Source: Cetorhinus maximus (taxonomy: Eukaryota). From it: a DNA stretch of 64,000 nt. Both the position numbers and the translations under genes were made by a program. The stretch spans positions 119,350,001 to 119,414,000 of the forward strand of contig NC_135891.1 in assembly GCF_964194155.1 (NCBI RefSeq), read 5' to 3'. The notes under the pieces are model-generated. The model ran no database searches. It was not told where the DNA came from and saw nothing but the letters and a program-made list of their open reading frames with translations. Below are positions 1,143 through 44,900 of this stretch, piece after piece; position 1 is the first letter of the stretch; each line of letters begins with the position of its first letter.

Positions 1143-19615
<18,473 letters not shown>

Positions 19616-19777
19616 CCTGGCGGCGGCCGAGAGGCGGCTCCGGTCCCGGGGCTGGAGCTCGGGCTGTTCCGGCTCTGGCTGCAGCCGCTGTTGTTTGGAT
19701 AGAGACTCTGACTGAGCGGAGGCAAAGGTCGCCAATCAAACACATCGAGAGAGGGAAAGAGAGAGAAGCATAGCAAC

Positions 19778-21092
19778 CAGGAACACCCCCTCCCGGGAAC
19801 ACCCCCTCCCAGGAACACAGCACCCGCCCCATCCCGGGAACACCCCCTCCCGGGAACACCCCCTCCCAGGAACACCCCCTCCCGGGAACACCCCCTCCCG
19901 GGAACACAGCACCCGCCCCCTCCCGGGAACACCCCCTCCCGGGAACACAGCACCCGCCCCCTCCCGGGAACACAGCACCCGCCCCATCCCGGGAACACAG
20001 CACCCACCCCCTCCCGGGAACACCCCCTCCCGGGAACACCCCCTCCCGGGAACACAGCACCCGCCCCCTCCCGGGAACACAGCGCCCACCCCCTCCCGGG
20101 AACACAGCACCCACCCCCTCCCGGGAACACAGCACCCACCCCCTCCCGGGAACACAGCACCCACCCCCTCCCGGGAACACAGCACCCGCCCCCTCCCGGG
20201 AACACAGCACCCGCCCCCTCCCGGGAACACAGCACCCGCCCCATCCCGGGAACACAGCACCCGCCCCCTCCCGGGAACACAGCACCCGCCCCCTCCCGGG
20301 AACACAGCACCCGCCCCCTCCCGGGAACACAGCACCCGCCCCCTCCCGGGAACACAGCACCCGCCCCCTCCCGGGAACACAGCACCCACCCCCTCCCGGG
20401 AACACAGCACCCGCCCCATCCTGGGAACACAGCACCCACCCCCTCCCGGGAACACAGCACCCGCTCCCGGGAACACAGCACCCGCCTCTTCCCGGGAACA
20501 CAGTACCCACCCCCTCCCGGTAACACAGCACCCACCCCCTCCCGGGAACACAACACCCACCCCCTCCCGGGAACACAACACCCACCCGCTCCCGGGAACA
20601 CAGCACCCGCCTCTTCCCGGGAACGCAGCACCCACCCCCTCCCGAGGACACAGCACCCGCTCCCGGGAACACAGCACCCGCCTCTTCCCGGGAACACAGT
20701 ACCCACCCCCTCCCGGTAACACAGCACCCACCCCCTCCCGGGAACACAACACCCACCCCCTCCCGGGAACACAACACCCACCCGCTCCCGGGAACACAGC
20801 ACCCGCCTCTTCCCGGGAACACAGCACCCACCCGCTCCCGGGAACACAGCACCCACCCCTTCCCGGGAACGCAGCACCCACCCCCTCTCGAGGACACAGC
20901 ATGCACCCACTCCCAGGGACATAACACTCACTCACAGCACCTACTCCCTCCCCGGGGACACAGCACCCGCTCCTGGGGACACAGCACCCACCCACCCCTT
21001 CCCCGGGGACACAGCACCCACCCACCCCTTCCCCGGGGACACAGCACCCACCCACCCTTCCCTGGGGACACAGCACCCACCCACCCACCCAC
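19778..21092 (+). repeat. GC-rich 25-bp/15-bp VNTR immediately upstream of TM6SF2
   Basis: Units gggaacacagcacccgccccctccc and gggaacaccccctccc, with a ~200-bp higher-order duplication in the distal half. Confidence 0.93.
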
Positions 21093-21329
21093 TCACGATC
21101 CCGCACACACACACTTCCTCCCAAACCTGCAAAGGAACACAACCAAAATCCGCAGGAACACAAAATCCAACCACACCTCCACCAGGAACATAACACTCAA
21201 CCCCAGAAACAGCCAGCCCCTCACCCCTCCCACCCACCCTCAACTGCATCACATCCCCAATACCCAAAAAGAACATTTGATCCCCATGTGCATCAGGGCA
21301 CTGTTGAGTGTTGATGGGATTGTTCTATT

Positions 21330-21778
21330 GGAAAGGGAGTGCAGAGGAGAGATTGGGCTGACTAGGCCCGTATTCACTGGAGTTTAGAAGAATGAGAACA
21401 GGGTCTCATTAAAATGTATAAATTCTAACAGGGCTGGACAGACTGGATGCAGCGATGATGTTTCTTCTGGCTGGGGGGGGCATCTAGAACAAGGAGTCAC
21501 AGTCTCAGGATACAGGGTATACAATCTAGGACTGAGATGAGCAGAAACTTCTTCACTCAGAGGGCGGTGAACCTGTGGAATTCTCTACCACAGAAGGCTG
21601 TGGAGGCCAAGTCACTGAATATACTTAGAAGGAAATAGATAGATTTCTGGACTCTAAAGGAATCAAGGGGTATGGGGAGAGAGCGGGAGCATGATGTTGA
21701 GATAGACAATCAGCCATGATCATATTGATTGGCAGAGCAGGCTCAAATTGCCGACTCCTGCTCCTATTTTTCTATGTC
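21330..21778 (+). mobile_element. CR1 LINE 3' fragment
   Basis: agaaacttcttcactcagagggcggtgaacctgtggaattc and CR1 3' UTR. Confidence 0.75.
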
Positions 21779-23218
21779 ACCAACTCCTTCCCCCTCCCTG
21801 ATAAGCATCACAAAGACTGCCCATTTCTATCTTTCTAACATGTCCATCTGATGCTGATGCCCACCTACAACTTGTTTACCTCCAACCTTGGCTATTCCAA
21901 CACACTCCGGGCTAGCTTCCCACATTCTACTTTCAGTTAATCTAAAACTCTACTGCCCATTTCTTGCCTCGCGTCTAGTCCCATTCACAGACGTGCTTCC
22001 AATCTGGTAACACTTCCATTTTGAAATTCATATCCTTGCTTTCATATCCCTTTTCGGCCAGGCTCCTTCCCATCTCTAATCTCCTCCAGCTCCACAACCC
22101 TCAGTGAGGGTCTCTTATTTCTCTCAGGGAATTGAGGGATATGGGCCAAAATCCTGGAATTCCCTTCCCAACAGCATTGTGGCTGCGCCTACACCACATG
22201 GACTGTAGGCGTTCAAGAAAGCAGCTCACCACCACCTTTCTCAAGGGCAATTAGGGATGGGCAACAAATGCCAGCCTAGCCAGTGACACCCATATTCTGT
22301 GAAAAAAAGATATCTGCACTCGTCCAATTCTGGCATCTTGAACATTGCCCTATTTTGAGCACTCCACTATTGGTGACCATGCCTTCAGCTGCCTAGACTT
22401 TAAGCTCTGGAACTTCCTCCCTAAACCTCTCCATCTTCCCCTTTAAAAGCATTCCTTAAAACTTATCTCTGACCAAGCCTTTGGCCACTTACCAGATCAT
22501 CTCCCTACATGCTTCAGAGTCAAAATTTTGACACTGCACCTCTGTGCAGTGTCCTGGGATGATTTACTACATTTGTAAGGTAGCGTTATTGTAAGTTATT
22601 GCTATTGTCGAGCAGAGGACAGTCAGGGCTCCTGCCCCAACTCACTGAAAAGTGAGCTAGTGTATTTGGGTGGACAATGGGTGATCTTTTTCGCACTCGA
22701 GCATTATGGAATCTTTGGAATTCTCTACTTCAAAGGGCTGTAGATGCTCCATTGTTGAGTATATGCAAAGCTGAGATAGATGGATTTTTGGTCTCAGGGA
22801 ATTAAGGGATATAGGGAGAAGGCAGGAAAGTGGAATAGAGGTAGAAAATTAGCCACGATCGTATTGAATGGCAGAGTAACCTTGATGGGCCATAGGGTCT
22901 ACTCCGGCACCTATTTCCTCTGATCTTGTGACAGGATTTGTCTCTGTGTTGTCCCACATAGTCCAATAACCTGTGAACAGTTTACTGTCCTGTCGGGATA
23001 AATCAGTTCCAGACATTGGTTGGGCCATATTTAGAATCGGGTATCTAATTGCCCAGTCTCTCTGCTGCTCCCTCAGAAATCAGCTCGCCCAACATGATCC
23101 AGGAATCAAACCTGGGTCTTTCTCACCTGCGAGATGCAGTTACATAATGTCCAATGTAAAAACTGGCTTCCTTAAAAAAATAAAAATCAAGACTCACGTG
23201 ATGTTTAGAATGATAAAA

Positions 23219-23935: not shown

Positions 23936-26900
23936 CTGAAACAAAGGAAGGTCCAGTGTTACTTCATACAAGGAATGTCAGGCAGCAAAAAGAACAAATG
24001 GCCCAGTAAACCTGGCTGACACACCAGGATGGTTGGAGCATGACCAGCTCTGCCTATCCCTCCACATCACATTCCCTCTAGAGTCATATAATCTCCTAGG
24101 AAAAGGCAAAATAAACGGGAGAAAAACCCAGAGATAATAAGGGGAAATAATAATCTGGAAAATGTTCAAGTCAGCAGCTTCATGGGAAACTCTCAAACCT
24201 TAGACAAGTACAGCCACTATAACAGAGCAAGGCAGGACAGAGCATTCCGCTTGATTGCCCTGTGGACTCGATATCCTCCATCACCCTTGCACAGTGGCTA
24301 GAGTCTGAACAAACTGTGGGATTCACTGCAGCAACTCGCCACAGTCACTGCAACAGTACTGCTTCCCGTGCCCTCCCACTGAGGATAAGGGCAGCAATGC
24401 AGTAGGAGCACCATCACCTCCCAGTCTCTCTCAGAATCAAAGAATAATATAGGACAAGGAGGCCAATTGTCCCAATGTCTTATCCAATTAGGAACATAGG
24501 AACAGGAGGCCAATCAGTCCCTCAAGTCTCTGCTATCATTCAATCAGGCCATTCAGCCCCTCAAGTCTGTTACATCAACCAAAAGGAAAGCAGCATCTTT
24601 TATTTTCAAATTTAAGATTCCAAATCCAGAGATCATGGTCTTTACAGAGAGTAGGTGGTTCTCAGGTGATCTGAATAAATTCATAAAATTGGAACGTTGA
24701 ATTCAGTGCGCCCAGCATTGACAGTGGCGAGAGTTCTTGGCCCTTCCTCCGCCTCATGTGCATGTTGTGATCACCTACCAGCGGGTTGGGCCTGAACCTG
24801 TAGGCCAGCATCATCCGCTTGCGGAATGCCTCATACTCGTCATCGTCTTTATTCAGCTCTGCTGGTCGATCGATACCAAACCCGGCTCCGTCAACTGCCG
24901 TGGTGCCTCTGCAGGCAAAAAAAAGAGAGGGAAGTGGAGAGGCTAGAGAAGCTGGCATTTATCTCCTTAAAGCAGAGATAGGTAGAAAGATTTAAAATCA
25001 AAATTACTGGGGGTTTTGAGAGAGTAAATGTGGAGAGGCAGTTTCCAGTCATAAGAAGGTTGGAAAGGGGAGAGGAGAAGAATTTTTTTTTTTTTGCATG
25101 AGCTGTTCCATTCTGGAATTAGATTGCGATTAAAAAGCATTGGATTCCGGAGGATTGACATGTGTGAGGGAGATTCCCTCCAGCTAACCCTGCAAGGAAT
25201 AACTTTGGCTGTGTTGAGAATATAACTCAGGCAGTGGCCTGATGCTGCTCGATTTCCTGCTCGAGTCTGTTGGCCATCTCGTTGTTCACACTAGCTTCAG
25301 ATGGGCATCCGAATTGGAAAATTAAAATGAGGATGGGGGATTAAAATCAGCCTCTTTGCGGGATTGGGTGGTTAAAATAACCACTCACATCCCTCCCCTT
25401 TAAACATACATTACTGGCACTTCTAAAACATGTACAACGATACTGAGGAATGCTGGTTGCAGAATGGTGTGCAGACATCTAAAAGCTCCCTCCCTTTCCC
25501 CCAGTTTAGGCAACAGAATATGGGATTATTTCATATATCAGAGCCTAGTTGGCCTACTACTATTTCAGTACCTGGGAACGGGAGCTTTGATGCCTTGTCC
25601 CTCTGAGCCCAATCCATCGCCCTCCTTCCAGCCCATTTTCATCAGCATCTGGTAACCAATGTTCTCCACAGTAATTTTGAAATCCTTGTAGTCGGAGTAA
25701 TCAGGCTCTCTCCCTTCCTGTGAAAGACAGACAAGAAAGTGTTGAAGTATTCAGACGCACGGAATAATGGCAGGGGAAGTGTGTGTGCACGCACTTCACC
25801 CCTGCGCTCACTAACCTACATCGGCACCTGGTTCAGCAACCCCTCGCTTTTAAAATTCTTATCCTAGATTTTCAAAACTCTCCACTGCCTCCCCCATTAC
25901 TATCTCTGTAATCTTCAGCCCAACAACCTTCCCAAGGTCTCTGCGCTCCTTCAATTCATATGCAATGATTTTCTTCACTCCACAACTGGCAGCAATGTGC
26001 CTTTATAAATTTTTTCTGTAGTGGGTGACTATTTGTTTACATGCATCGGCCCTTGAATTTTTATGCTCAGCCACATGTGCAGTCACTTAGAGAGGCCAAA
26101 TTGTGCGCAGCCTACGTGGGGACCTTTGGGTTGCTACACGATCATGCAGCGTGGAGGAAACATTGATTGGCAGCCAATCCTCAACAATCTAGTCCCGAAC
26201 CACTGGAATTCCCTCCATTAGCTTGTCAATCTCCCTCTCTTCTTTCCTCCAAGATATTCTTCAACATTAAAATCTTTGACCAAGCTTTCAGTTCAACTGT
26301 CCTATTTTCGCCTTAGGTGGATCATCATCAGCTATTATCTGATGATGCATCTTGGGATGTTTTTATTATGTTAAAGGCACTACATAAATGCAAGTCCATA
26401 CATTAGTGGTATGTTACATGGAATATCATAGGTGTACAGCCTGTACCTTTCTGATGTGCACTAGCTACAATCAAGGTACTGTTAGCTGTGCAGGGCCTTG
26501 CAAAAGTCACTTTTTTACTACATGCGCAAGTCCAATCCATATCAACATACTTCATCAATAGAAAAGCCTGGCTCCCCGATTAAGGCTAGCTTGAATGAAC
26601 TGAAATGGAATTGGAAAAACACAAGCGATGAACCTTTCCCCTGTCTACTGACTGTGGAGTATAGCATGAAATGAGTTGGGCAAGTCTCAATCCAGTTCCT
26701 ATTAGATATAAGCACACAGCATAGAACAGCTCCTAATATGGCCCTAAATCTCACTGTCAGAACACCAAGGCGGCTGGTGTGGAAAAGAAAATGTCACACC
26801 AATGCAGTGGGGCCCTCTTTGGAATTTGACCTGAAGCACATTTGTTGGGTCAATGTAGAGGGGGCTTTAATCTGTATCTAGCCCCATGCTGTACCTGCCC

Positions 26901-29900
26901 TGGTAAAGATAGGAAAGAGTTATTCAAAGTAGCAATAGCCATTTTCCACTTAGTATTATTTCTGGATAAGCTAACGTACCTTTAGAGCTTTGAACGTCTC
27001 CATGAATTTGTCCAGTTCATCAGGGGGTAGGAAGTCTCCAATGAAGTGCTTCCCGCGACCCATCTCGGTCAGTTGTTCTGCCCATTCTATCAAGAACAGA
27101 ACAAACCATGATGCAATATAGGCAACTAGCTGTGTGAAACACTACTAATGCTGTGCTCTTCCAAAGGCCAGATGACTTCAAGAAGTAGAAATGGGGATAG
27201 GCCAATCGGCCCCTCGAGCCTGCTCTACTATTCAATAAGATCATGGCTGATCTTCTACCCTAACTCCACCTTCCCTGACACTATATCCCTTGATAGTATC
27301 CAAAAACCTATCTCTGCCTTGAATATACTCAACAACTGAGCATCCACAGCCCTCCAGTATAGAGAATTCCAAAGATAGTGAAAAAATTTCTCATCTTAGT
27401 CCTAAATATGGCTGACCCCCATTATGAGACAGTGATCCCTCTTTCTAGACTCACCAGATAGGGGAAACAGACTCTCAGCATGTACTGTGTCAATCCCCTT
27501 AAGACAACAGAGAACATGACCAGAGGTTTTCAAACAAGGAAGAACATATAGGAATAAGAACATAAGAAATAGGAACAGGAGTGGACCATTTGGCCCTTCG
27601 AGCCTGCTTCGCCATTCACTAAGACCATGGCTGAGCTTCTTGTGTTTCGATTTCCACGTTCCCATCTACCCCGATAACCTTTTGATTCCCTTGCCTAACA
27701 AGAATCTACCTACGTCTGCCTTAAAAATATTCAATGACCCTGCTTCCACCACCGTCTGAGGCAGAGAATTCCAAAGTCGCACAACCCTCAGAAAATTTCT
27801 CCTCATCTCTGTTCTAAAAGGGCGACTCCTAATTTTAAAACAGTGCCCCCTAGTTCTGGACTCACCCACAAGAGGAAACATCCTTTCTACGTCCACCTTG
27901 TCAAGGCCATTCAGGATCTTATATACTTAAATCAGATCATCCCTCACTCTTCTAAACTCCAGTGGAAACAAGCCCAGCCTGTCCAGCCTTTCCTCATAAG
28001 ACAACCCACTCATTCCACGTATCAATCTAGTAAACCTCCTTTGAACCGCCTCCAATGCATTTACATCCTTCCTTAAATAAGGGGACCAAAACTGTACACA
28101 GTATTCGAGGTGCAGTCTCACCAATGCCCTGTATAGCCGAAGCATAACATCCTTACTTTTATGTTCAATCCCTCGCTTAATAAAGGATAGCATTCCATTA
28201 GCCTTCTTAATTACTTATTGTACCTGCATACTAACTTTTTGTGACTCATGTACTAGAACACCTAGATCTCTCTGCATCTCAGAATTATGCAGCTGTTCTC
28301 CATTTAAGAAATACTCTGCTTTTTTTGAATTCAATCCCAATTCGGTCTGTAACCGTTTTCCCCGATGTAGTATTGTCAGAGCCCTTGAAGGCAATTACAC
28401 TAAGTAGAAAGGAAGAGAAAACCTGCACTGATGACCCCAGGATGTCCCAAAGTGCTTCACAGCCAATGAAGTATGTTTGAAGCGTTGTCTTTTGGATAAG
28501 CTCAGATCACCAGAAGACTCAGCACATCTAGGCATCACCCGTGGTGATGCCACCCCGCTGGTTAAATCCTTTACAATCTGCTTAAACCTGAACCACTGCA
28601 GACTGCCATGTCCCTATGTTTATCTCTGACCTCTATAGACTGTTGTGATCTCATGTTTACCTCTGGTCTTCTCCATCTCCATATGCCGCAGACGATGTTC
28701 CCAGGTGCCAGCATCACCGTCGATTTCCTCGTCGCTGTCATACTCGTGTCTGTGATCTTGAATGGCTTTCTCCCACATCATCTGCATCTCCTGCATGGCT
28801 TGCTTGTGCTTCATGATCATGTCGTACATTTGCTGCATCTGTAAACCACCCAGAATTCACTTCAGCCATCCTGCCAAATGTCCACAGGTTGCTTCAGTTC
28901 CCTCATGTACAACCTGTCCAATATTTCTCTCCTTAAATGGTAATCTCTTTCCCTATCGCCCTGCCTGGTTCCTCTGTTAGTGCCCCTGTATAGCTCTCCC
29001 ATGCTCTCTGTAAACACCCCTACCTAATTCCTCTCCAGCTCTCTCTAACTCTGCTGGGCTGCTTCCCTATTCTGGTGATATTGCTGCACAATCCCTCTGC
29101 CTCTCTCTGTAAGTGACCCTGCCTGGTTTCTGCCCCTTTGTAAATAACACTGCCTGGTTCTCCTCTCTCTCCCTCCGTAGCTACCATTTTTCAGTGTCAG
29201 TTTCTCTCTTTCTCTGTGTCTCCCCTTCCCCATCAGCATCTGTGCCTGTCTCCTTTCTTTAGGTGATTATCACTAATATCTGTGTCCTGTATTTCTCTCT
29301 GTTGGCCTAGTGATCCTCTCTTTCTCTGGAAATGCAACCGTACACCCTCTCCTCTCTCCAAGCATCGCAGCCCACAATCCCCAGTGCAGTTCATTTCTCT
29401 AATCTTACATTAAATCAGTAGCTTCTCAAGGACAATTAGGGGATGGACAATAAATGCCGATCTTGCCAGTGACACTCATGATCCATAACTGAATTTTTAA
29501 AAAAGCTTTACTTTTAGGTCAGTTTTGGAGAGGTTGCCACGAAACGGGCGCATTTTGAAAAGCAGAAGAGGCTTCATTTCTTCAAAGCGCTAATCAGGAA
29601 GGAGTGAGCAAAGTGAGGAAAGTCAGCAACCTAGTACCAGAGTGTTTAATCAAAGGTGACTGCCTTCAGCTGACAACGCTGTAGGTCAGAATCAAAACAG
29701 GACAGAGTAATAGTGCCTAGAAACAGGCAGCCTCCAACCCCTGCTGCTGCCGCAGAAATGGTGGTGTCCTGCATGACTGCAGGGCTGCGCTCCCCTTGGC
29801 CACACCCTGCCATTAAAGATCATCTCACTGGAATTTACCTCCTGCTGTTCCTTCAACTGTTTCTTCTGTGCATCACTGAGCTCGTTGACTCCCACCAATC

Positions 29901-32900: not shown

Positions 32901-35900
32901 CTGTGAATGAGTACATTCAAGACTGAGATTGATAACTTTTTCGGAAATAAGGGAACCAAGGGATATGGGATAGGGCAGGAAAGTGGAATTGAGGTAGAAG
33001 ATCAGCCATGATATTGAATGATGCAACATACTGAAGGTGACAAATGGCCTACCTAGCTCTTATTTTTTAAGTCTCTTATGTTCTAATTCCAACAGTGGCT
33101 ACAATTCAGAAGTACTTCATTGGCTGTGAAGTATTTTGGGATGCTCCAAAGGCATGAGGGGTGCTATTTAATTACAAGCTTATCTTTTCTTAAACAGCTA
33201 CAAGCCTTACAAACCAGGCAGCATGATAAAATGGTGCTTACCAGAAGGCTGGATTGTCTCGATTGTCCCGAACAGCCATCTCTTCCACGTCTGGACCCCC
33301 GTCAGCGACAAACTTCGCCAGCTTCTCAATCACACTTCGGATCTCCGGGTCCTCTGGGGGTGAAACTTTAAGCAGGCTATCAGTACTTGAGTTCAACTCA
33401 CACACCCAACAGTCAACAGCCAAACAAGGTCTACAAGATTGGATGGGTAAGAGTAGGATACAGGGAGAGCAATGGTTAAATCACACTCAAGTGGTTTAAT
33501 GGAGACAGTGTCCCACACAACTGCACTTAGCTCTCAAACCTCTGGGTGTTAACTGGTTGTTCTTTAGAGTGTTCCAAAAAATTTACGTCACTGAGACAGT
33601 GTAGAGGGAGCTTTGCTCTGTATCTAACCCCGTGCTGTATCTGTCCTGGGAGTGTTTGATGGAAACAGTGTAGTGAGAGCTGTACTCTGCATCTAACCCA
33701 ATGCTGTACCTGCCCTGGGAGTGTTTGAAGAGGACAGTGTAGTGGGAGCTTTACTCTGTATCTAACCCCATGCTGTACCTGTCCACTCTATCTAAGACTA
33801 CATATTAATTCCTCCCCTCCAATACTAATTTTTCCCTCCAACAAAACAATGCGAGGGGCAAGAGTCACTAATAAATCCAGTAAGGAATTCAGCAGAAATC
33901 TCTTTACCAAGAGAGTGAAATTTGCTACCTCAAGAAGTGGTCGAGGCAAATAGCATAGGTGCATTTAAGGGGAAAATAGGAAACTCCTTGTGGGAGAAGG
34001 GATTAGGATATGCTGACATGGTGAGGTGAAGAGGAATGAGAGAAGGGTGAGGAGCATAAACACTTGCACAGACCTCTTGGGCTTACTGGCTTATTTTCAT
34101 TCACAAATTCTAAAACAGGAGAAAATAGTAAAAAGGAGAGTACTAAGAAGAATTCGCAACCTCCTCCCATCGATGGACCATCTGTCCTGCGTCCCTTCCA
34201 TTCTCCACCCATGACCCCCACAAACTCTAAACTGTGAATCACTGTTAGTGTCACATCTTCAAACCTCATTAGCCTGTAGCTGAAAGCTAATCAGATCACT
34301 TATTAGCAAACTGGAAAAAACTTTTGTTTAATTTGTAATTACAAATGCAATCAGGTCAAAATAAAGAACTACTGTCTTAACCAGTGACACTGATCACCAG
34401 TAAGTCAACTGGTTTTCTCTTTTTGTGGACAAACGTGATTTGTGTTCCCTTAATTTAGATAGTTGAGAGGGTGATCTATTTGAGGTTTTCAAAATAATAA
34501 AGGGATTTGAGACGATAGATGTAGATAAACCATTTCCCATGGTGGGGGATTCCAGAACAAGGGGGCATAGTCTTAAAATTGGAGCTCAGCATTTCAGAAG
34601 TGAAATCAGGAAGCATTTTTTCACACAGAGAAATCTAGGACTGTCACCGCTAAAAGGTTGAGAGTCAGCTGAAATAGGAGACTGAGATGAGTAGATTTTT
34701 GTTGGGTCAGTGGTATCAATGGATATGAATTAAAGGTGGGTAAATGGAGTTAAGATGTAGATCAGCAATGATCTAATTGAATGAAGTAACAGGCTCAAGG
34801 GGCTGAATGGACTCCTGTTCCAATTAAAAGTGGGATTTCTCTGGCTGTATCTTGGTACCAACAGGTCAGAAACCTTAGTGAAAAAACTAAGAAAGAGTAG
34901 CGTCTTTGAAGGTGACAGGACAAGAAAGCTGTACAAAAAACATATGAGATCATTGCTTTTATAAATAGATGCACAGAGAATTGATGGACCTTCTGTGTTG
35001 TGCTAGTCTTTGACTCTACAGAACAGAAAAGCAAGGAAGTTATGTTAAGCTTTTGTAATAACGGGTTATGCCTCAAATGGAAGATTGTATCCAATCCTGG
35101 GCACCACACTCTAGTCAAGGCCTTGGAGAGGGTGCAGAGAAGATCTACTAGAATGTTTCCAGAGATGAGTGACTTCAGTTAAGTAGAGGGGCTGGAGGAG
35201 CTGGAGTTTTTCTCTAGAGAAAGTTAAGAGGAGATTTACTAGAGATGTTCAAAATTATGAGGGGTTTTGATCAGAATGAACAGGAGAAACTGTTTTCATT
35301 GGCAGAAGCCAGAGCACCGTAGATTCATGATTAACGGAAGAACCAGAGGTAACATGAGGAAACTTTTTAAAATGCTGTTATGATCTGGAACACAGCCTGT
35401 AAGGGTGTTGGAAGTAGATTCAATGACATCCAAAATAGATTTGGATAAATACTTGCAGGGAAATATTTACAGTGCTATGAGGAAAGAGCAGAGAGAGTGG
35501 GATTAATTGGATAGCTCTTTCAAAGGGTTAACACAGAGATGACGGGCTGAATAGCCCCCTTCTGTACAATTAAATGTTTCCAGCAAAGATTAAAGGCAAA
35601 AAGATGCACTGAACTGATTTTGCCAACATGGTTTCCCCTGTTCCAGAGGGAAGTTAATGCAACTATTAAAGTAACAAACTTGGCTTCAGTGCACAAATAA
35701 AGAGGCACAGTGTATGCATGTTCGTGGGGGAGGGGGTGTGGTTAGAGTTTCATATGGGAGGGGCTATGAGTTTGCATGCATGGGGGCGGGTGTGGATATA
35801 CTCTTTCATAGTTCAATAAACGTAAAAATTTATGCAGGATTACACCGTTCTGAAATCAACATCAGCCCTCCAGACAGAGATAGAACATGGATGCTCTACA

Positions 35901-38900
35901 GAGCTCCAACATTACCCTGAGAATGGTCTTCCACTGTGGATTCAATCTCAGAAGACATGCGTTGGTCAGTGTGCATACTGCAACTAGCTGAGGCAAAGGC
36001 TTTTTTTTAAAAAAAACAACCATCATCCAATTAAGAAAAAAAACTACTAGCTGTATTGGCTGAATTTCAATCCATTTCTGAGAGGTGAAAGGTCAATAGA
36101 ACAACCCGCTTTGGAATGCTCGGCATCATCACTGCCCTCTGAACTTTGTGCAGTTTTAAACCTTTATGCATGGGATAAGTCTTAGACAGAGATTGTCCCC
36201 TTCCGATTCCCCTACCTTTTGGCACTGATGAAGTGGTGGTGGAGGTTGGCACAGGTGGCCTGGACACCGACACCCCAGACAGTTTTTCTCGTTTGATTTC
36301 AGCCACCTTTTTCTTGTAATAAAGAAAAGCTCGGCTATTGCGATCATACAAAAACCTGCAACAAAGGTGGAAATTACGTTTAGCACCTTTCTCTTGACAA
36401 AGAAATCCCAGCTTGTGATCCCCGCAGCGTTATATAGAACGCATACTGCAAGCTTCTTACAGAGGATTTATCCACCCACATTCTTATATGCCCCATGGCC
36501 ATCAGACCAGATAAATCAGCTCCATCAGTCTGCATTTCCCTGACTGTACTACCATCAAGCAGCTCTGGAGAGCATTCAAGGGACCGGATCAGTAAACACT
36601 GGAACCGACACCAAGAGGAGCTGTAAGTACTGGCATCGATGCAGATCCTGCTCCTGTTTTATTTGAGCTGCATTATTGGCTGATGGAGGAGAGAGACGAT
36701 ACTCACGAGAAGGCGGGGTTATCCCTGTTGTTCTGAATGGCGAGCTTTTCGACTTCATGGCCCCCATCTGCTACGTACTTCGCCAACTTCTCAGCGACGC
36801 TCCGAACCTCCGGCTCCTCTGGGGGTGAAACTTTAAGCAGGCTATCAGTACTTGAGTTCAACTCACACACCCAACAGTCAACAGCAAACAAGGTCTACAA
36901 GCATGGTTGGGGGCAAGAGCAGGATACAGGAAAAGGACGGATTTAATGAAATATGAAGCCAATATTGAGAACATTTACAATGTAAAACACTCCATGCTGG
37001 CACTGAATTTGTTAATTAGAGGAGAAGATAAAGTATTCTCCTCCAACCCTTCCAATACACACAAAGGATTGCTTCCCCAATGGCTTAGCGTAGATAAAGT
37101 CAATGCTTGTTCCGTAGTAGGAACATGCAGATTCGAGCTTTCAGGTTCGATTTGCAGGCTATGTGGTTAGCTGCTCTTAACCAGGGTAGCTGAGGTGGTA
37201 GAAATGGCCTCAGAACGTCTAGGCTGGGAAAAAGAAATGTTTCCTCTCTTGATCGCTAATGGCAACCAATGTAGGGAAGAGTAAACGTGCAAAACAAGGA
37301 GAGGATCACGCTCGTCTGTGATGCTCCTAATGGCTCAATGCCTTGCAGGTACTCTATCCAGCACATACATGTCACATGACTGAGATATCAGGGAATGTCT
37401 GTGGGACTGAGCCCTCAGCAAGAGTCAGGAACATCAGGAAAGTGGGCATGAAGGCAAAAGCGGAGAAACATAATGAAACCTACTTGCTCCTAATTTTTGG
37501 GGAATGTTTTGCCAGCACATAGAGGTAGTTGTCTCCTTTCACTACAGAGCTGTTCCTTTGCTATTAGCTCCACTGGCAATTTGCTGGAGAAGTGTACTTT
37601 CCTGACCTAGCCATTGATCAGGGGCATCCAACCCAAAAAAATTCTACATTGGATTTCCATTGGCACAAAACCCATACTGAAACTTTCCCAACTTCCCTTT
37701 GGCACTACATTTATATAGCATCTTTTACGACTTCAGGATATCCCAAAATACTTCCAGGCCAACTGAAGAATTCTGAAGTGTAGCAACTGTGTAATGTAGG
37801 AAATGTGGTAGCCAATTTGGACACAGCAAGCTCCCACAAACAGCAATACAAGGGTGGGATCAGCTGTTTTACTGATGTTGATTGAGGCACGAAAGTTCCA
37901 GGACACTGAGGAGAACTCCTCTCCTCTTCTATGAATAGGTAAATTCTAACCTGTAGGAAGGATTCTTAGTCTTAATCCTTTCTTTCTGAACCTGCGGGAA
38001 TTTGCCATATATGGTCCCTGTAGGGGAGTCCATGTTTAATAATTAGTTTTAGTTTAGCTATGTGCGATTGATTTCCATGATAAAGTGTATTAATCAATTA
38101 ACTCAAAATGCAAGGCACTAGTATCACACTACATGAACCTATCTTTAGGTGCATCCGTCCTTAACAAGTGAAATGTGCCATATAGGCTTAGGCCAAAGTA
38201 AGGTTGCGTCTTATGGTTTTATTACAGGACAAGTGTTGGAGAAAACCCACTAGTACATTTTATGGCTTGATTACAGGGCAAATGTGACGTCACTTGTAGT
38301 CCAATTGTCAAAGCAAAGGCTCTGGGAAGTGGTTAACACTTATGCTGTATTCTTCTCAAAAGCCTATTGTGTGAAGTAAAACAGTTTTAGGTCTCAAGCT
38401 ACAGTTCTAAATTAAATCATTTTAGCTTTCTAACTTAAAGTGCCTTAAAGAGAAACAGTCACTTTCCTTCAAAGTATACAAAGACCTATGCCTTACTGTG
38501 GCTTTAAATGTACTGTAGTAATTTTGTAATTGCTGTATTAGTTTAAGATTGTGTACCTCTTGGACTCTAGTTTTTTTTTATAAGTAACTTGCTTCAGGCA
38601 TCAGCAGTCAATAGGAAGTCACATATAGGAGTCTGAACTTTCCAGAACACCCAAGATGTATCAATTAGGCATTTTAGGGCAATAAGCCTGAAGCATCAAT
38701 CATTAGGAAGTGACACCCTTGTAAATAAGCAGACATACAAATGACCTTGTGGTGCCTCGTTATCTTAATGGAAAGCTATAAACTTAATAAAATAACAGGG
38801 AAAATCTGCAATGAGCAGGATGCTCAGTGACCATCACCCTTAAGAGGTCAATCAGGCACTAATTAGACATCACCTAACCAATAAGGCACTGATCATGCGT

Positions 38901-41900
38901 TGCTTGGATATTGAGAACTCAGAGATACTACTGACCATGCATAGAGGTAGTGAATTAGCAAGAGTTAATAAACAGCAATTTTCAGCAGCTAAGTGCACAG
39001 CAAAAGGAAGAGGAGATAGAAGTTAGACTTCGGTCAACAGAACATTTCAAGACACAATGCTACAGTGGGCCGGAAGTCATGAGCCAGTGTTCCAGAGCAC
39101 ACTGACTGTTCCACTGCCTTTGCTAAGTATTGCATTTTGTACTTACTTCAATTAACTTAATAAATTCTGTGAAATTTGTGACAACATACTCATACACAGA
39201 GTGGTCTGTAGTTAGTCGGAGCTGCAGGTTTCTTTTAGATCAGCTCTCCCAACTCATTTTAACAATTGTAATCAAGGCGTTGTCGAAGCTTTTGTCTTGC
39301 ACTCATCAGGACAATTCGCAGGAATACCAAATGTAAAAGGAACAACAATTTATACTTCATGAGAAGAGAGTGCCAATTGGTTGGCAAGTGGACTCTGATT
39401 GGTAGAGGTGTTGCTGCGGAGAATGCACCAGTTAACTGATGACTGACAGTTAACTGTCAAGCTTTGTTTCAATTCAAACCAGGCAGGTTGACTCTGATTG
39501 GTCAAGGCATTGCCCTGGGGAATGAACCACAGAATGGCTGTCGCCAATTTTGTTAAGTTGAAACAGGCGCAATGTGTGCACGTTCATTTTGTCTGCAAAG
39601 AACAGGGTCCTGTGTATTAATATATGTTCTTCTAGCACTCCTAAGTGTATCACACTTCAAGCCCGACTGATAATCTTAAATTGGTTGTCGTCAGCACACC
39701 AGAGCGAATCTGCCTGGTTTGAAATGAAACAAAGCTTGGCAGTTAACTGTCAGTCATCAGTTCACTGGTGCATTCTCCATGGTAACACCTCTATCAATCA
39801 GAGTCCACTTACCAACCAATCAGCACTCTCAAAGTATAAATTGTTGTTTCCTTTACATTGGGTATTCTTGCGAATTGTCCTGATGTATGCAAGAAAAGCT
39901 CCACATGTGTCTTTTTTCAGCAATACTCAAGTTCTGTACTACCAAATGACAATGTAATTAACTTTAATTGTAAAACTTAAAAGTTGGAATGAACCCCAGG
40001 TCTTACAAAGGTTATAGGTTTGAGCCCCACTCCAGAGACTCAAGCACATAATCAAACTGACATTTCCAGTGTCACACTGATGGAGTGCTGTACTAGTGGA
40101 GGCACCTGCTTCTTGATGAGACATTAAACTGAGGCTTTCTCTGTCCTCTCAGGTGGCGTAAAAGATCCAGAGAAGAGAACAGGAGCTCCCTTGATGACCT
40201 GGCCATTATTTATCACTCAACCAATACCCTAAAACAGATGATTGGTTACCACATTGCTGTTTGTGGGAATGTGGCATGCACAAATTAGCAGCCATGTTAT
40301 CTACATTATAACAGCGACTGTACTTAAAAAAGCCATTAGCTGTAAAGCACTTTGGAAGATAGTGAAAGACACTACATAAACGCAAATCCTTTCCATTTAC
40401 CGACGGCAGTTTTTGCATTCACTCAGGGGAATCTTGTCTGATTTTCTATAGAACATGGTTACTGGCACAGAAACAGCACCAATAACAAATAATCTAATCA
40501 CTGATTAGCTATAATAATAGCCTGCCCTTCCTCCCCAGCTCCCTCTTCTTCTGTAAGTTTTTCTTAGGCTATAATGGAACTGTAGTATGCAAGTCCCCAC
40601 TGTCTTTCCCAGGTGACTGATTTACAGCCAATGAAATCCTCTTGAAGTGCAGTTGGTATATTAATGTAGAAAATGCAGCAGCCAATTTGCATACGATAGG
40701 GTACCAATGTGGAAAAAACATAAGCAATGGAAAGTCTTTGGCACTCTCTTCCTCAAAAGGTGGTGGAAGCAGTCTTTGAATATTTTTGGGGCAGAGCTAG
40801 ACAGATTCTTGATTAACAAGGGGGTGGAAGATTATCGGAGATAGGCAAGAATGTGTGGCTGAGATTATATTCAGATCAGCCATAATCTTATTGAATGGTG
40901 GAGCAGCGTGGAGGGGCCGAGTGGCCTACTCCTGTTCCTAATTCGTATGTTCATAAAACAAGACTGGATAGCAATCAGGTAGGATCCCAGCTGATTCTTT
41001 TTTCTTCTACCGCAGGGAGCCAAGGGACTGGATTCCAGGGCGAGACAGCACCTTCAGACGAAATGGGGGTAAAAGAAATACCCTCTCAGCAAACCTCTCA
41101 GTACAGCAGCAACGGCTAATCACGAAGGCACAGTATCACAGTTTAAGTAATGCTAGTTACCTTTCACTTCTGCCCACTGCTCAAGGTCCTCATCCTCCTC
41201 CTCTTCATCATCTGGTGACTGGAAGACACTGGGGCGGGCTGCGATTGGCGTCTGCTTGGCATGGGTGTAGTTCTTCATCTGACCTAACGTGCTTCCCAAA
41301 GATGCCACTCCCAGGCCAGGGCGTTTCCCGATCAGAATCTGCCTCTTCTGTGCCTGGGTCCCTGAGGGGCTGGAGTTACTGCTGTTGCTTGGTGGCACCC
41401 CTTCAGGGGGAAAAAATAAATCGACGATCAGTGCGTCGAACATTGCAATCAAAGGTGAACTTCCTTAAATCAAAAGCATAAATCAGGAAGTTACGCTGAA
41501 ATGCCAAACATAGGACCCACTGTACCCCTGTCCAAGTTAAGTATCAAAGTGATTAACTTATCAGAATTCCAGGATTAAAATTTTTGGGCCCCACCCACAT
41601 TCTGAAATGGTTGAATACATAGTTAATGGAACATGTTCTAATACTATAGGATATTACAATAACTAATGCATCCTTAATTGATCATCCGTGGCTTTTGACA
41701 CTGCCAGTAAGGAGCAAGTGCAGTTTTCACATTAAGCATAGAGGGTGCAGACAATTGGACCAGACACACAGGCCTTTCTGTCCTTATTTTCATATTTCCA
41801 TTAGAAATTTCTATATTCACATTTATAATCTAAGCTTATCAGATTCTAATTATACCCTTCTGCCAGCAGTAATACTGCAATGCTTCTATATAGGAACAGG

Positions 41901-44900
41901 ATGAGGCCATTCAACCCCTCAAGCCTTTCCCAACATTCGATTAGAACTACTTGGATCTACTTCCTAATCCGTCTATCTGCCTTTGTTCCATAAACCTCAA
42001 TAGCCTTGTCTAACAAAAAATAATCAATCTCAGTTTTGGAGGTCTTGTGGCTCAGTGGGTGGCAGCCTGTGAGCCAGAAGTTCCAGGTTCAAGTCCCAGT
42101 CCAAGACTTGTCGGCCATGGAAGGAGCGTTCATGACAGTTCAACAGGCTGATAATCAATCTGCTAATCCTTCCAACACTTCCCCATTATCCTCAAAGCGA
42201 CAGAAAGAGTGTGTAAAGATATGAAACAAACAATCTCAGTTTTTTAATTTTCAATTGAGCCCCCAGTCTCAACATCCTTTTGGGGAGGGGTTGTGTGGTA
42301 GAGTTCCAGATTTACATTACACTTTGTGTGACGGCGTCTTCTTGGCATCACCCTTGAGCATCCTGGCTCTAAGTTTAAGGTTATACCCCCTTATTCTGGA
42401 CTCCCACCCCCAGAGGAAATAATTTCTCTCTATCAACCATATCAACTCCTCCAATCATAAATACTTCAGTTAGATCACCCCTTAATCTTCTATCTGAAAG
42501 GGAATAAAAGGCAACTGGCAGAACATCATAATTACAAAGCATGGTATCATAGGCAGATTCAATTATATCTGGGGACATGGGAATTTTAATCTGAATACAA
42601 ACTGAAGACTTCTAATATATATATATATTTATATATGGGCTAAAAGGCCTACTCCTGTTCCTATGCTTTTACATTCCCAGCTTTCTGCCTAACTCACCTG
42701 ATGGCACTGAATCAGAGTGCAGCACAGTTTCTGAGAAATCTGCTGCCTTCCAGTATCTCATTCAAGTGGGCATTCATTGTATACGAGACCAGGTCAATGT
42801 ATGAAAAGACTTATTAACCACAAGTTTATAAGTAGGGCATGGGGTAAGAAACTGCAGTGGAGGCCAAACCTGCACATATATTCAGCAGACAGGAGCGGAA
42901 AAAGCCTGTTTGATCCTGATCAAGGGCATTGAGATGAACGGGAATACCCCAGCTACTGGTCCTCCTGAGATCTTCTCTGTACAGCTGACGTCTCTACAGC
43001 AAGTTAAGCCCATCTGGCCTCCACACACTCCTCACCTGTACTTGCTTTCTCCTTCTGCATCTTCAGGAACTGCTGCAGGAAACTCCCATCATTGGCAAAC
43101 TTGTTGGACGTGTTCCTTTGGTCGTTATCTCTATAGAATAATTAGAATGACGGTGAATTCCAGACAAACCAGCAAAAGCAAAGCCAGGCTGAATACCAGT
43201 CACAGAATTCAATAAGACAGCTCTGAAAATATACTTCACACACAACAAATAAAATGTCTGTTCAAAATCAATTCAACCTAACTAGAAAAATCATTAGGAA
43301 TTATGCCCATATTCCCAAATGGAGGATACAATGGGGTAACTGGCTTGTGCAGTGGGTTAAACACAGGCATTGGGTTCAAACTCAAGCTAGTCAATGAGCT
43401 GAACATCTTCTCCCCATGTACCTCAAGGGTTCTTTGTGCAATTAGTTTGGACAGCCTCAGCCTAGTTGTAGTGGAGAAGGGACAATAGAAACAAATAACA
43501 CACCTAATTCAACACTCAGGAGGCTGCCTGATAGGCAGTGTGGGACAGTAGAAAATTTTAAACTTGGTGCAGTGCGAAGCACTTGTGAAGCATGACTGAA
43601 GTGCATTAATGGGACTGTGTAGAGGGAGCTTTACTCTGTATCTAACGCACGCTGTACCTGATGTGGTATCAACTGATGCAGGCACTTGGAACCTGAAATG
43701 AAATCTGTTCCATCTGTACTACTAGCATTCCTCAGCTTAATAAGCTCAAGTTAAAATTGAAGTGAACGGCATACTTGTGAGAAGTAATAATCACCACATA
43801 CTGAGCAGGCGTCACTTGCAGCTTTGTGAAGCTGTCCTTTTTAGCTCTCTCCATTTTGGCTTCGATTTCCTTTTTCTTCTGTGCTATCAGCTCCTCTTGT
43901 TTCATTAGATTCACGTACAATTTATTGGGTCTGTTGGAGGAGCCCAGACGCTCCAGGCTGAAGGATCGCTCACTGCTGGACTTTGTGGCCCCACCAGCCT
44001 TACCTACAATATAAAAAAAATGAAAACACACAAATGGATCAATCCAAGAAACATTTATAAAAGGGAAATGGTAAAGCTAATCCTGCTTGTCAATTAGTTT
44101 TGTACAAAAAATTGTAAATGTATCGCGCATTGAAACAACTGGACACACAGAGTAGTGAAGGTGTAAAGGAACATTTTCTATAAGCATTTTAAAAGTTTCA
44201 ATGAGATCATCTCTCATTCCTTTAAATTCCAGTGATTACTGGACTTAATCTCTACTTTTGGGATAACCCTTTCATCCCAGAGATCAATCTGGTAAACCTT
44301 CATTGCTTCTCCCAACATGGCAAGTCCAGGGACTGTGGATGCTCAGTTAATCAGCATATTCAAGACAGATTGATAAGATTTTTGGGCACTAACAGAATCA
44401 AAGGGTTTGGGGATAGGGAAGGAAAAAGGAGCTGATATAGGAGATAAGCCCTGATCTCACTGAATGGCAGAGTAGGCTCAATGAGCTGTATGGCCTACTC
44501 CTGCTCCTATTTTTATTACTGACACTGGCGATGGTTTATTAAGCAACATTCAGGGTCACTTCATAGATGTGTCTATGTATCAGGTCAATCAGGGACTGTA
44601 AAGGGGGATAAGTTGAAGCAGAGGGCACATGCTTGCAACTGAAGCATTGCTCACCTCAGGAGCAAATGGTGGTTATTCACTTGGGGGGAGACACAGCTCT
44701 GGATGAATACAGGGGTTGGCTGAGGCTGTAGCAGGAATTGAATGAGATGGAGAGAGCGCATAATTAATCAATTTCTCACTCGAGAATGTGGTTTCAGCAC
44801 TCAATGGGCTAAATGCAATCCATCAACGGGTTTGCTGTCCAAATTGAATGTTGTGACCCTTTTATGTGGACAATGATACATCACAGTTTACCAGTGAACT

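Follow-up and report, generated by a model that had tools for sequence, protein, structure and literature searches.

A stretch of 64,000 nucleotides from Cetorhinus maximus (NCBI RefSeq assembly GCF_964194155.1, contig NC_135891.1, positions 119,350,001 to 119,414,000), hereafter the window, contains a SUGP1-type gene on its minus strand, with two Surp modules followed by a G-patch. Coordinates are those of the window, and upstream and downstream are given relative to the gene. From its compact 14-exon layout and what is known of the human protein, we take the gene to be probably SUGP1 rather than the longer paralogue SUGP2. Twelve exons were mapped in the window from the minus-strand open frames and by reading the exon edges; they are numbered 2–13, a presumptive numbering that leaves out exon 1 and the last exon. 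Exon 4 (41161–41400) ends in phase 1, its last base (41161) being the first base of a split codon, and is followed by the donor GTAACT. Exon 5 (36707–36830, 124 nt) encodes the first half of SURP module 1 (Pfam Surp, PF01805, E-value 1.2e-6) and is followed by GTGAGT, while exon 6 (36216–36355) encodes the second half of the same module and ends in phase 1, as exon 4 does. Exon 7 (33242–33365), also 124 nt long, encodes the first half of SURP module 2; its Pfam Surp match (E-value 1.2e-7) comes from the portion below a core that is identical to the start of exon 5. The gene identification is backed by the G-patch domain in exon 12 (25577–25717; PF01585, E-value 2.5e-14), and a 43-amino-acid piece of exon 13 matched no Pfam family. 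Exon 8 measures 326 nt by eye, so that its skipping would shift the reading frame. Skipping of human exon 8 is reported to shift the frame too (PMC5181593), and both the exon order and this frame-shifting exon agree with the human numbering.

The end of intron 4 carries two potential acceptors. The productive one, an AAG, sets the first base of exon 5 at 36830. A first-pass annotation of the window had placed a second acceptor 64 nt upstream, and this position holds: a pyrimidine-rich tract (36896–36945) closes in a TAG at 36897–36895, and an exon extended from this site would start at 36894. The 64-nt segment from the upstream TAG to the productive AAG (36831–36894) would be exonic if the upstream acceptor were used. 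Given the phase at 41161, the extension read from its third base encodes LVCC and then a stop, which reproduces the premature TGA predicted earlier at 36880–36878, in frame after a 41161-to-36894 junction. With the later exons mapped, this stop can be placed far ahead of the later splice junctions.

Three additional AGs lie between the two acceptors, in agreement with the earlier reading, and the segment holds two further motifs. The first is a donor-like GTGAGT (36861–36866), the same hexamer as the actual donor of exon 5, separated from the upstream acceptor by 28 nt and from the first exon base by 30 nt. The second is a branch-like heptamer (36844–36850), which agrees with the yeast branch consensus at five of seven positions and is the best of six branch candidates in a scan of 37010–36815. 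Its A, at 36845, is at −15 from the first exon base, where the first-pass annotation had put it; the G of the productive AG follows it at 14 nt, and that of a CAG inside exon 5 at 26 nt. This CAG and a pyrimidine-rich run of 10 nt occupy 36819–36830 and form an in-frame alternative acceptor 12 nt downstream of the AAG, the use of which would remove four residues at the start of the SURP domain. In the same scan, the one other branch candidate near the exonic CAG lies 7 nt away, which is too close to be usable. Exon 7 has a matching in-frame CAG and pyrimidine run at 33354–33365 (minus strand), 12 nt inside the exon.

The two acceptors before exon 5 were compared with the other mapped acceptors, 12 in all; the last 100 nt before exon 7 equal those before exon 5, so the values of exon 5 were taken for exon 7. 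Over positions −20 to −3 the pyrimidine fraction is 0.67 at the upstream acceptor and 0.56 at the productive one. The earlier description of the productive site as having no pyrimidine tract is therefore overstated with respect to composition, the acceptors of exons 9 and 10 being lower still (0.50), although it captures the longest uninterrupted pyrimidine run, which at 3 nt is the shortest of the 12. Nor is the productive AAG unsupported, as it has a near-consensus branch site above it and, in the first bases of the exon, a pyrimidine run and CAG. The upstream site had been called strong, a term that also needs toning down: besides the fraction of 0.67 given above, it stands for a pyrimidine fraction of 0.78 over 40 nt and a lack of AGs in the 50 nt above the site. 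Seven non-acceptor AGs in the 16,272 intron bases of the gene reach the same grade, with thresholds set post hoc at the upstream site's own values. As same-grade AGs occur seven times in the introns of this gene, a lone decoy near an exon is within chance expectation.

What is beyond chance, unlike a lone decoy, is that the upstream acceptor has a near-identical twin, a feature absent from the first-pass annotation and new here. Local self-alignment of the window matches 36930–36702 (copy A) with 33464–33237 (copy B), the latter at the end of intron 6, directly before the exon that opens the second SURP module. Copy B has its own pyrimidine tract (33432–33464) with a TAG at 33433–33431, followed by a segment of 65 nt (33366–33430); use of its upstream AG would read through 11 residues and then a stop. 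Within the alignment, the copies share a core of 88 nt in copy A (36901–36814) and 89 nt in copy B (33437–33349) whose only difference is an additional G in copy B. This core begins with the final bases of the upstream acceptor, spans the entire segment and extends 16 nt into the exon, taking in the exonic pyrimidine run and CAG. Directly above the core, 22 of 29 alignment columns match, and farther upstream identity falls to 30%, as in random sequence.

The coding sequence past the core has diverged much further. There, 74 of 105 bases are identical, and 19 synonymous differences over 23.8 sites give a pS of 0.80, which is saturated, against a pN of 0.15; the first five codons show no synonymous differences between the copies. 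The non-coding part is thus far better kept than the coding part. At an identity of 70.5%, a run of 81 matches has a probability of 5e-13. The local alignment score of the twin is 250, compared with a maximum of 25 and a mean of 18.6 in 60 random intron pairs, and the other paralogous exon pair (exons 6 and 8) and the remaining intron ends score 16–31. No third copy was found in the window when a 42-nt part was searched with up to 10 mismatches. Because the exon bodies beyond the core are synonymously saturated, the core would reflect either strong constraint or a short and recent gene-conversion tract.

The explanation we favour, with somewhat less than even confidence, is that this SUGP1-type gene has two copies of a composite 3′ splice-site module, one ahead of each exon with which a SURP module begins, and that the upstream TAG of each copy acts as an unproductive acceptor coupled to nonsense-mediated decay (NMD). 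The sequence, its stops and the identity of the twins set against saturated synonymous sites are observed; the sites in use, the branch point, decay and a possible regulator are inferred. In each copy, the long pyrimidine tract and TAG would offer a competing acceptor, the use of which would add 64 or 65 nt, bring a stop into frame, truncate the protein and expose the mRNA to NMD. The GU-rich segment that follows holds a perfect donor-like GTGAGT and the near-consensus branch site, and productive splicing would proceed through this near branch site. Assembly of U2AF and U2 there could be aided by the pyrimidine run and CAG of the exon, and the proximal AAG would be chosen at the second step as the first AG to be suitably spaced from the branch. 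Branch-proximal AGs are reported to be favoured, with a typical branch-to-AG distance of 15–35 nt (PMC9984181). The fraction of transcripts that use the upstream TAG would then set the output of productive SUGP1 mRNA. As a conjecture, binding of U1 to the GTGAGT might cause steric hindrance at the upstream acceptor.

A human counterpart may exist. A cryptic 3′ splice site in intron 6 of human SUGP1 is reported to insert 58 nt and a stop, and its product increases with emetine, marking it as NMD-sensitive (PMC12434867, Cell Rep 2025). According to the same report, this site is the top event upon knockdown of AQR, and SUGP1 protein falls by 50–60% (PMC12434867).

Several points weigh against the favoured explanation. 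The human intron 6 site is matched with copy B by exon count, so that their orthology is presumptive, and the human site may be near-silent in normal cells, leaving little room for regulation. The 14-nt spacing between branch and AG in copy A is short by comparison with the usual distances (PMC9984181). One of the seven pyrimidine-rich AGs of decoy grade, at 25007 (minus strand), lies 99 nt above the exon 13 acceptor, with no sign of conservation. Finally, a single genome would look alike under constraint and under a conversion tract of about 90 nt.

The last point leads to a serious rival, possible though less probable to us, in which the upstream AG is a decoy that goes essentially unused, the copies owe their identity to short, recent gene conversion between paralogous exon starts, and no regulation is involved. 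The edges of identity are sharp, as a conversion tract would leave them, with 100% over about 88 nt giving way to 70% towards the exon and to 22 matching columns out of 29 towards the intron. Decoy-grade AGs do arise by chance at the rate given above, and the authors of the human study themselves term the intron 6 site a novel cryptic one (PMC12434867). However, the 29 columns above the core can still be aligned even though the exon bodies are saturated, which calls for an older conversion or for constraint. The identical tract also stops exactly after the exonic pyrimidine run and CAG, that is, at a functional boundary, and the human site at the same relative place (58 nt) points to a long-lived layout (PMC12434867).

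A more ambitious version of the favoured module would make both SURP exons an ancient, near-frozen dual-acceptor switch that reads branch-site proofreading (SUGP1-DHX15, AQR) and thereby tunes productive SUGP1 mRNA; we regard this as unlikely. The first-pass annotation had gone on to a specific model of self-sensing, in which SUGP1, through DHX15, rejects the weak productive acceptor, so that high SUGP1 diverts splicing to the upstream AG and NMD, low SUGP1 restores the productive site, and a negative feedback results. It compared the productive site with the acceptors that become active upon SF3B1 mutation or SUGP1 loss. The alternative acceptors promoted by mutant SF3B1 (AG′) are described as lying 10–30 nt upstream of the canonical AG, clustering at 12–24 nt (PMC4743009, PMC12434867). 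They are seldom followed by G and have a branch A 11–14 nt above and a branch that pairs better with U2 (PMC4743009), and their pyrimidine tracts are short, weak and interrupted by A (PMC12434867). The productive site does resemble them in its short, A-interrupted tract, its branch A 13–14 nt above and the lack of a following G; weak sites are said in a preprint to be repressed by DHX15 and SUGP1, and the module is doubled at both SURP exons. Relative to the exonic CAG, which had gone unmentioned, the AAG fits all the features described for AG′ sites. Relative to the competitor that had been named, the geometry is inverted: known sensitive sites lie upstream of the canonical AG, and the weak site of this gene follows its competitor at 64 nt.

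Other reports also sit poorly with self-sensing. The human intron 6 site is reported not to be induced by SF3B1 K700E (PMC12434867), and depletion of DHX15 tends to raise the use of proximal alternative 3′ sites according to the preprint, which predicts the opposite sign here. In tumours, loss of one SUGP1 copy (loss of heterozygosity) cuts expression and adds to the splicing phenotype, which argues against tight compensation. Cells expressing mutant SUGP1 retain normal endogenous levels, a weak test as the mutants are inactive. Literature searches listed no paper that deals with autoregulation of SUGP1 or with a poison exon in this gene, as judged by titles and the beginnings of abstracts. 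On this analysis self-sensing by SUGP1 is possible, weakly disfavoured and quite improbable.

It is equally doubtful that SUGP1 or SF3B1 governs a choice between the AAG and the CAG that lies in frame 12 nt into the exon. Such a choice would decide on the presence of four residues per SURP domain and involve no NMD switch. The AAG lies 12 nt upstream of the CAG, is followed by T and has a branch A 13–14 nt above it within the best-matching branch candidate, and the pyrimidine run and CAG belong to the frozen core. Against this, the scan gave the CAG no second branch candidate at a usable spacing, the other being only 7 nt away, so that a layout of one branch and two AGs is likelier, and the four residues are kept in both SURP exons.

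The presence of the segment in two introns of the same gene might suggest a structured RNA, or a portion of a small RNA gene, hosted in both. This is very improbable and was rejected, since the segment directly adjoins the exon, its folding energies are no better than those of shuffled sequences (z-scores of −0.11, +0.66, −0.97 and +0.90 for both copies in narrow and wide versions, 300 shuffles each), and the sequence beside the two copies holds no Rfam family at gathering score, one chance-level match to a long non-coding RNA (E-value 0.5) lying far off. Two other candidates were discarded. A mini-intron running from the internal GTGAGT to the productive AG would measure 36 nt, which is too short for the vertebrate spliceosome, and recursive splicing fails because no GT is regenerated where the extension is joined to the upstream exon.

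Elsewhere in the window, open frames lie within introns of SUGP1 at 27669–28214 and 42384–42611 (minus strand), which resemble C-terminal portions of a retrotransposon reverse transcriptase. Downstream of SUGP1, a hydrophobic open frame at 16736–17008 (minus strand) is possibly an exon of a membrane protein; a 45-amino-acid piece of it (17008–16874) matched no Pfam family. GC-rich tandem repeats at 19500–21300 and 18700–19400 (minus strand) lack stops in each of the three frames over as many as 486 codons, and the interval 20001–22000 has a GC content of 0.605 with a strong skew. Two runs of N occur at 5111–5515 and 9953–10087.

Control of SUGP1 dosage would matter because the missplicing that accompanies SF3B1 hotspot mutations is reportedly driven by loss of SUGP1 (PMC12434867). 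Were the twin module conserved and in use, the human intron 6 site, described as novel and cryptic, would be no accident but one of the two halves of an old, duplicated control element, and intron 4 would be a second place to examine in existing data sets. Should the dual-acceptor switch prove true, the gene would carry its own sensor for the dosage of a splicing-fidelity factor that cancers lose. The layout, with its productive proximal AAG and a pyrimidine run inside the exon, offers a natural test case for 3′ splice-site choice.

Among known systems, the human intron 6 site is similar in that an acceptor some 60 nt upstream of the canonical site (58 nt in human, 65 nt here) brings in a premature stop and, by exon count, precedes the second SURP exon. 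It differs in being reported for intron 6 only, as missplicing upon AQR knockdown, and neither a twin in intron 4 nor conservation is mentioned (PMC12434867). Like the AG′ sites, the productive AAG has a weak, A-interrupted tract, a branch A 13–14 nt above it and T as the next base, and it lies 12 nt upstream of the exonic CAG, within the pyrimidine tract of that CAG, a position within the range given for AG′. Unlike them, it is a productive coding site, and relative to the competitor 64 nt upstream its position is outside that range. Skipping of SUGP1 exon 8, driven by a human single-nucleotide polymorphism and HNRNPA1, is reported to lead to NMD (PMC5181593). It is likewise an unproductive SUGP1 splice form that lowers the protein, but it arises by exon skipping and not from an alternative acceptor.

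The genes of splicing factors reportedly contain NMD-coupled poison exons and splice sites, often ultraconserved and autoregulated, as described by Lareau and by Ni in 2007. The present module shares with them a splicing-factor gene, a splice choice that brings in a stop and unusual identity in the non-coding flanks; here, however, the identity is between two paralogous sites of one genome and not between species. At the exon 3 acceptor of Drosophila Sex-lethal, a proximal AG serves the second step of splicing, and a distal pyrimidine tract and AG are required for the first, in a manner dependent on SPF45; this case is mentioned in PMC9984181. Although spacing and organism differ, both systems have two AGs around a pyrimidine run, with the branch-proximal AG carrying the coding junction.

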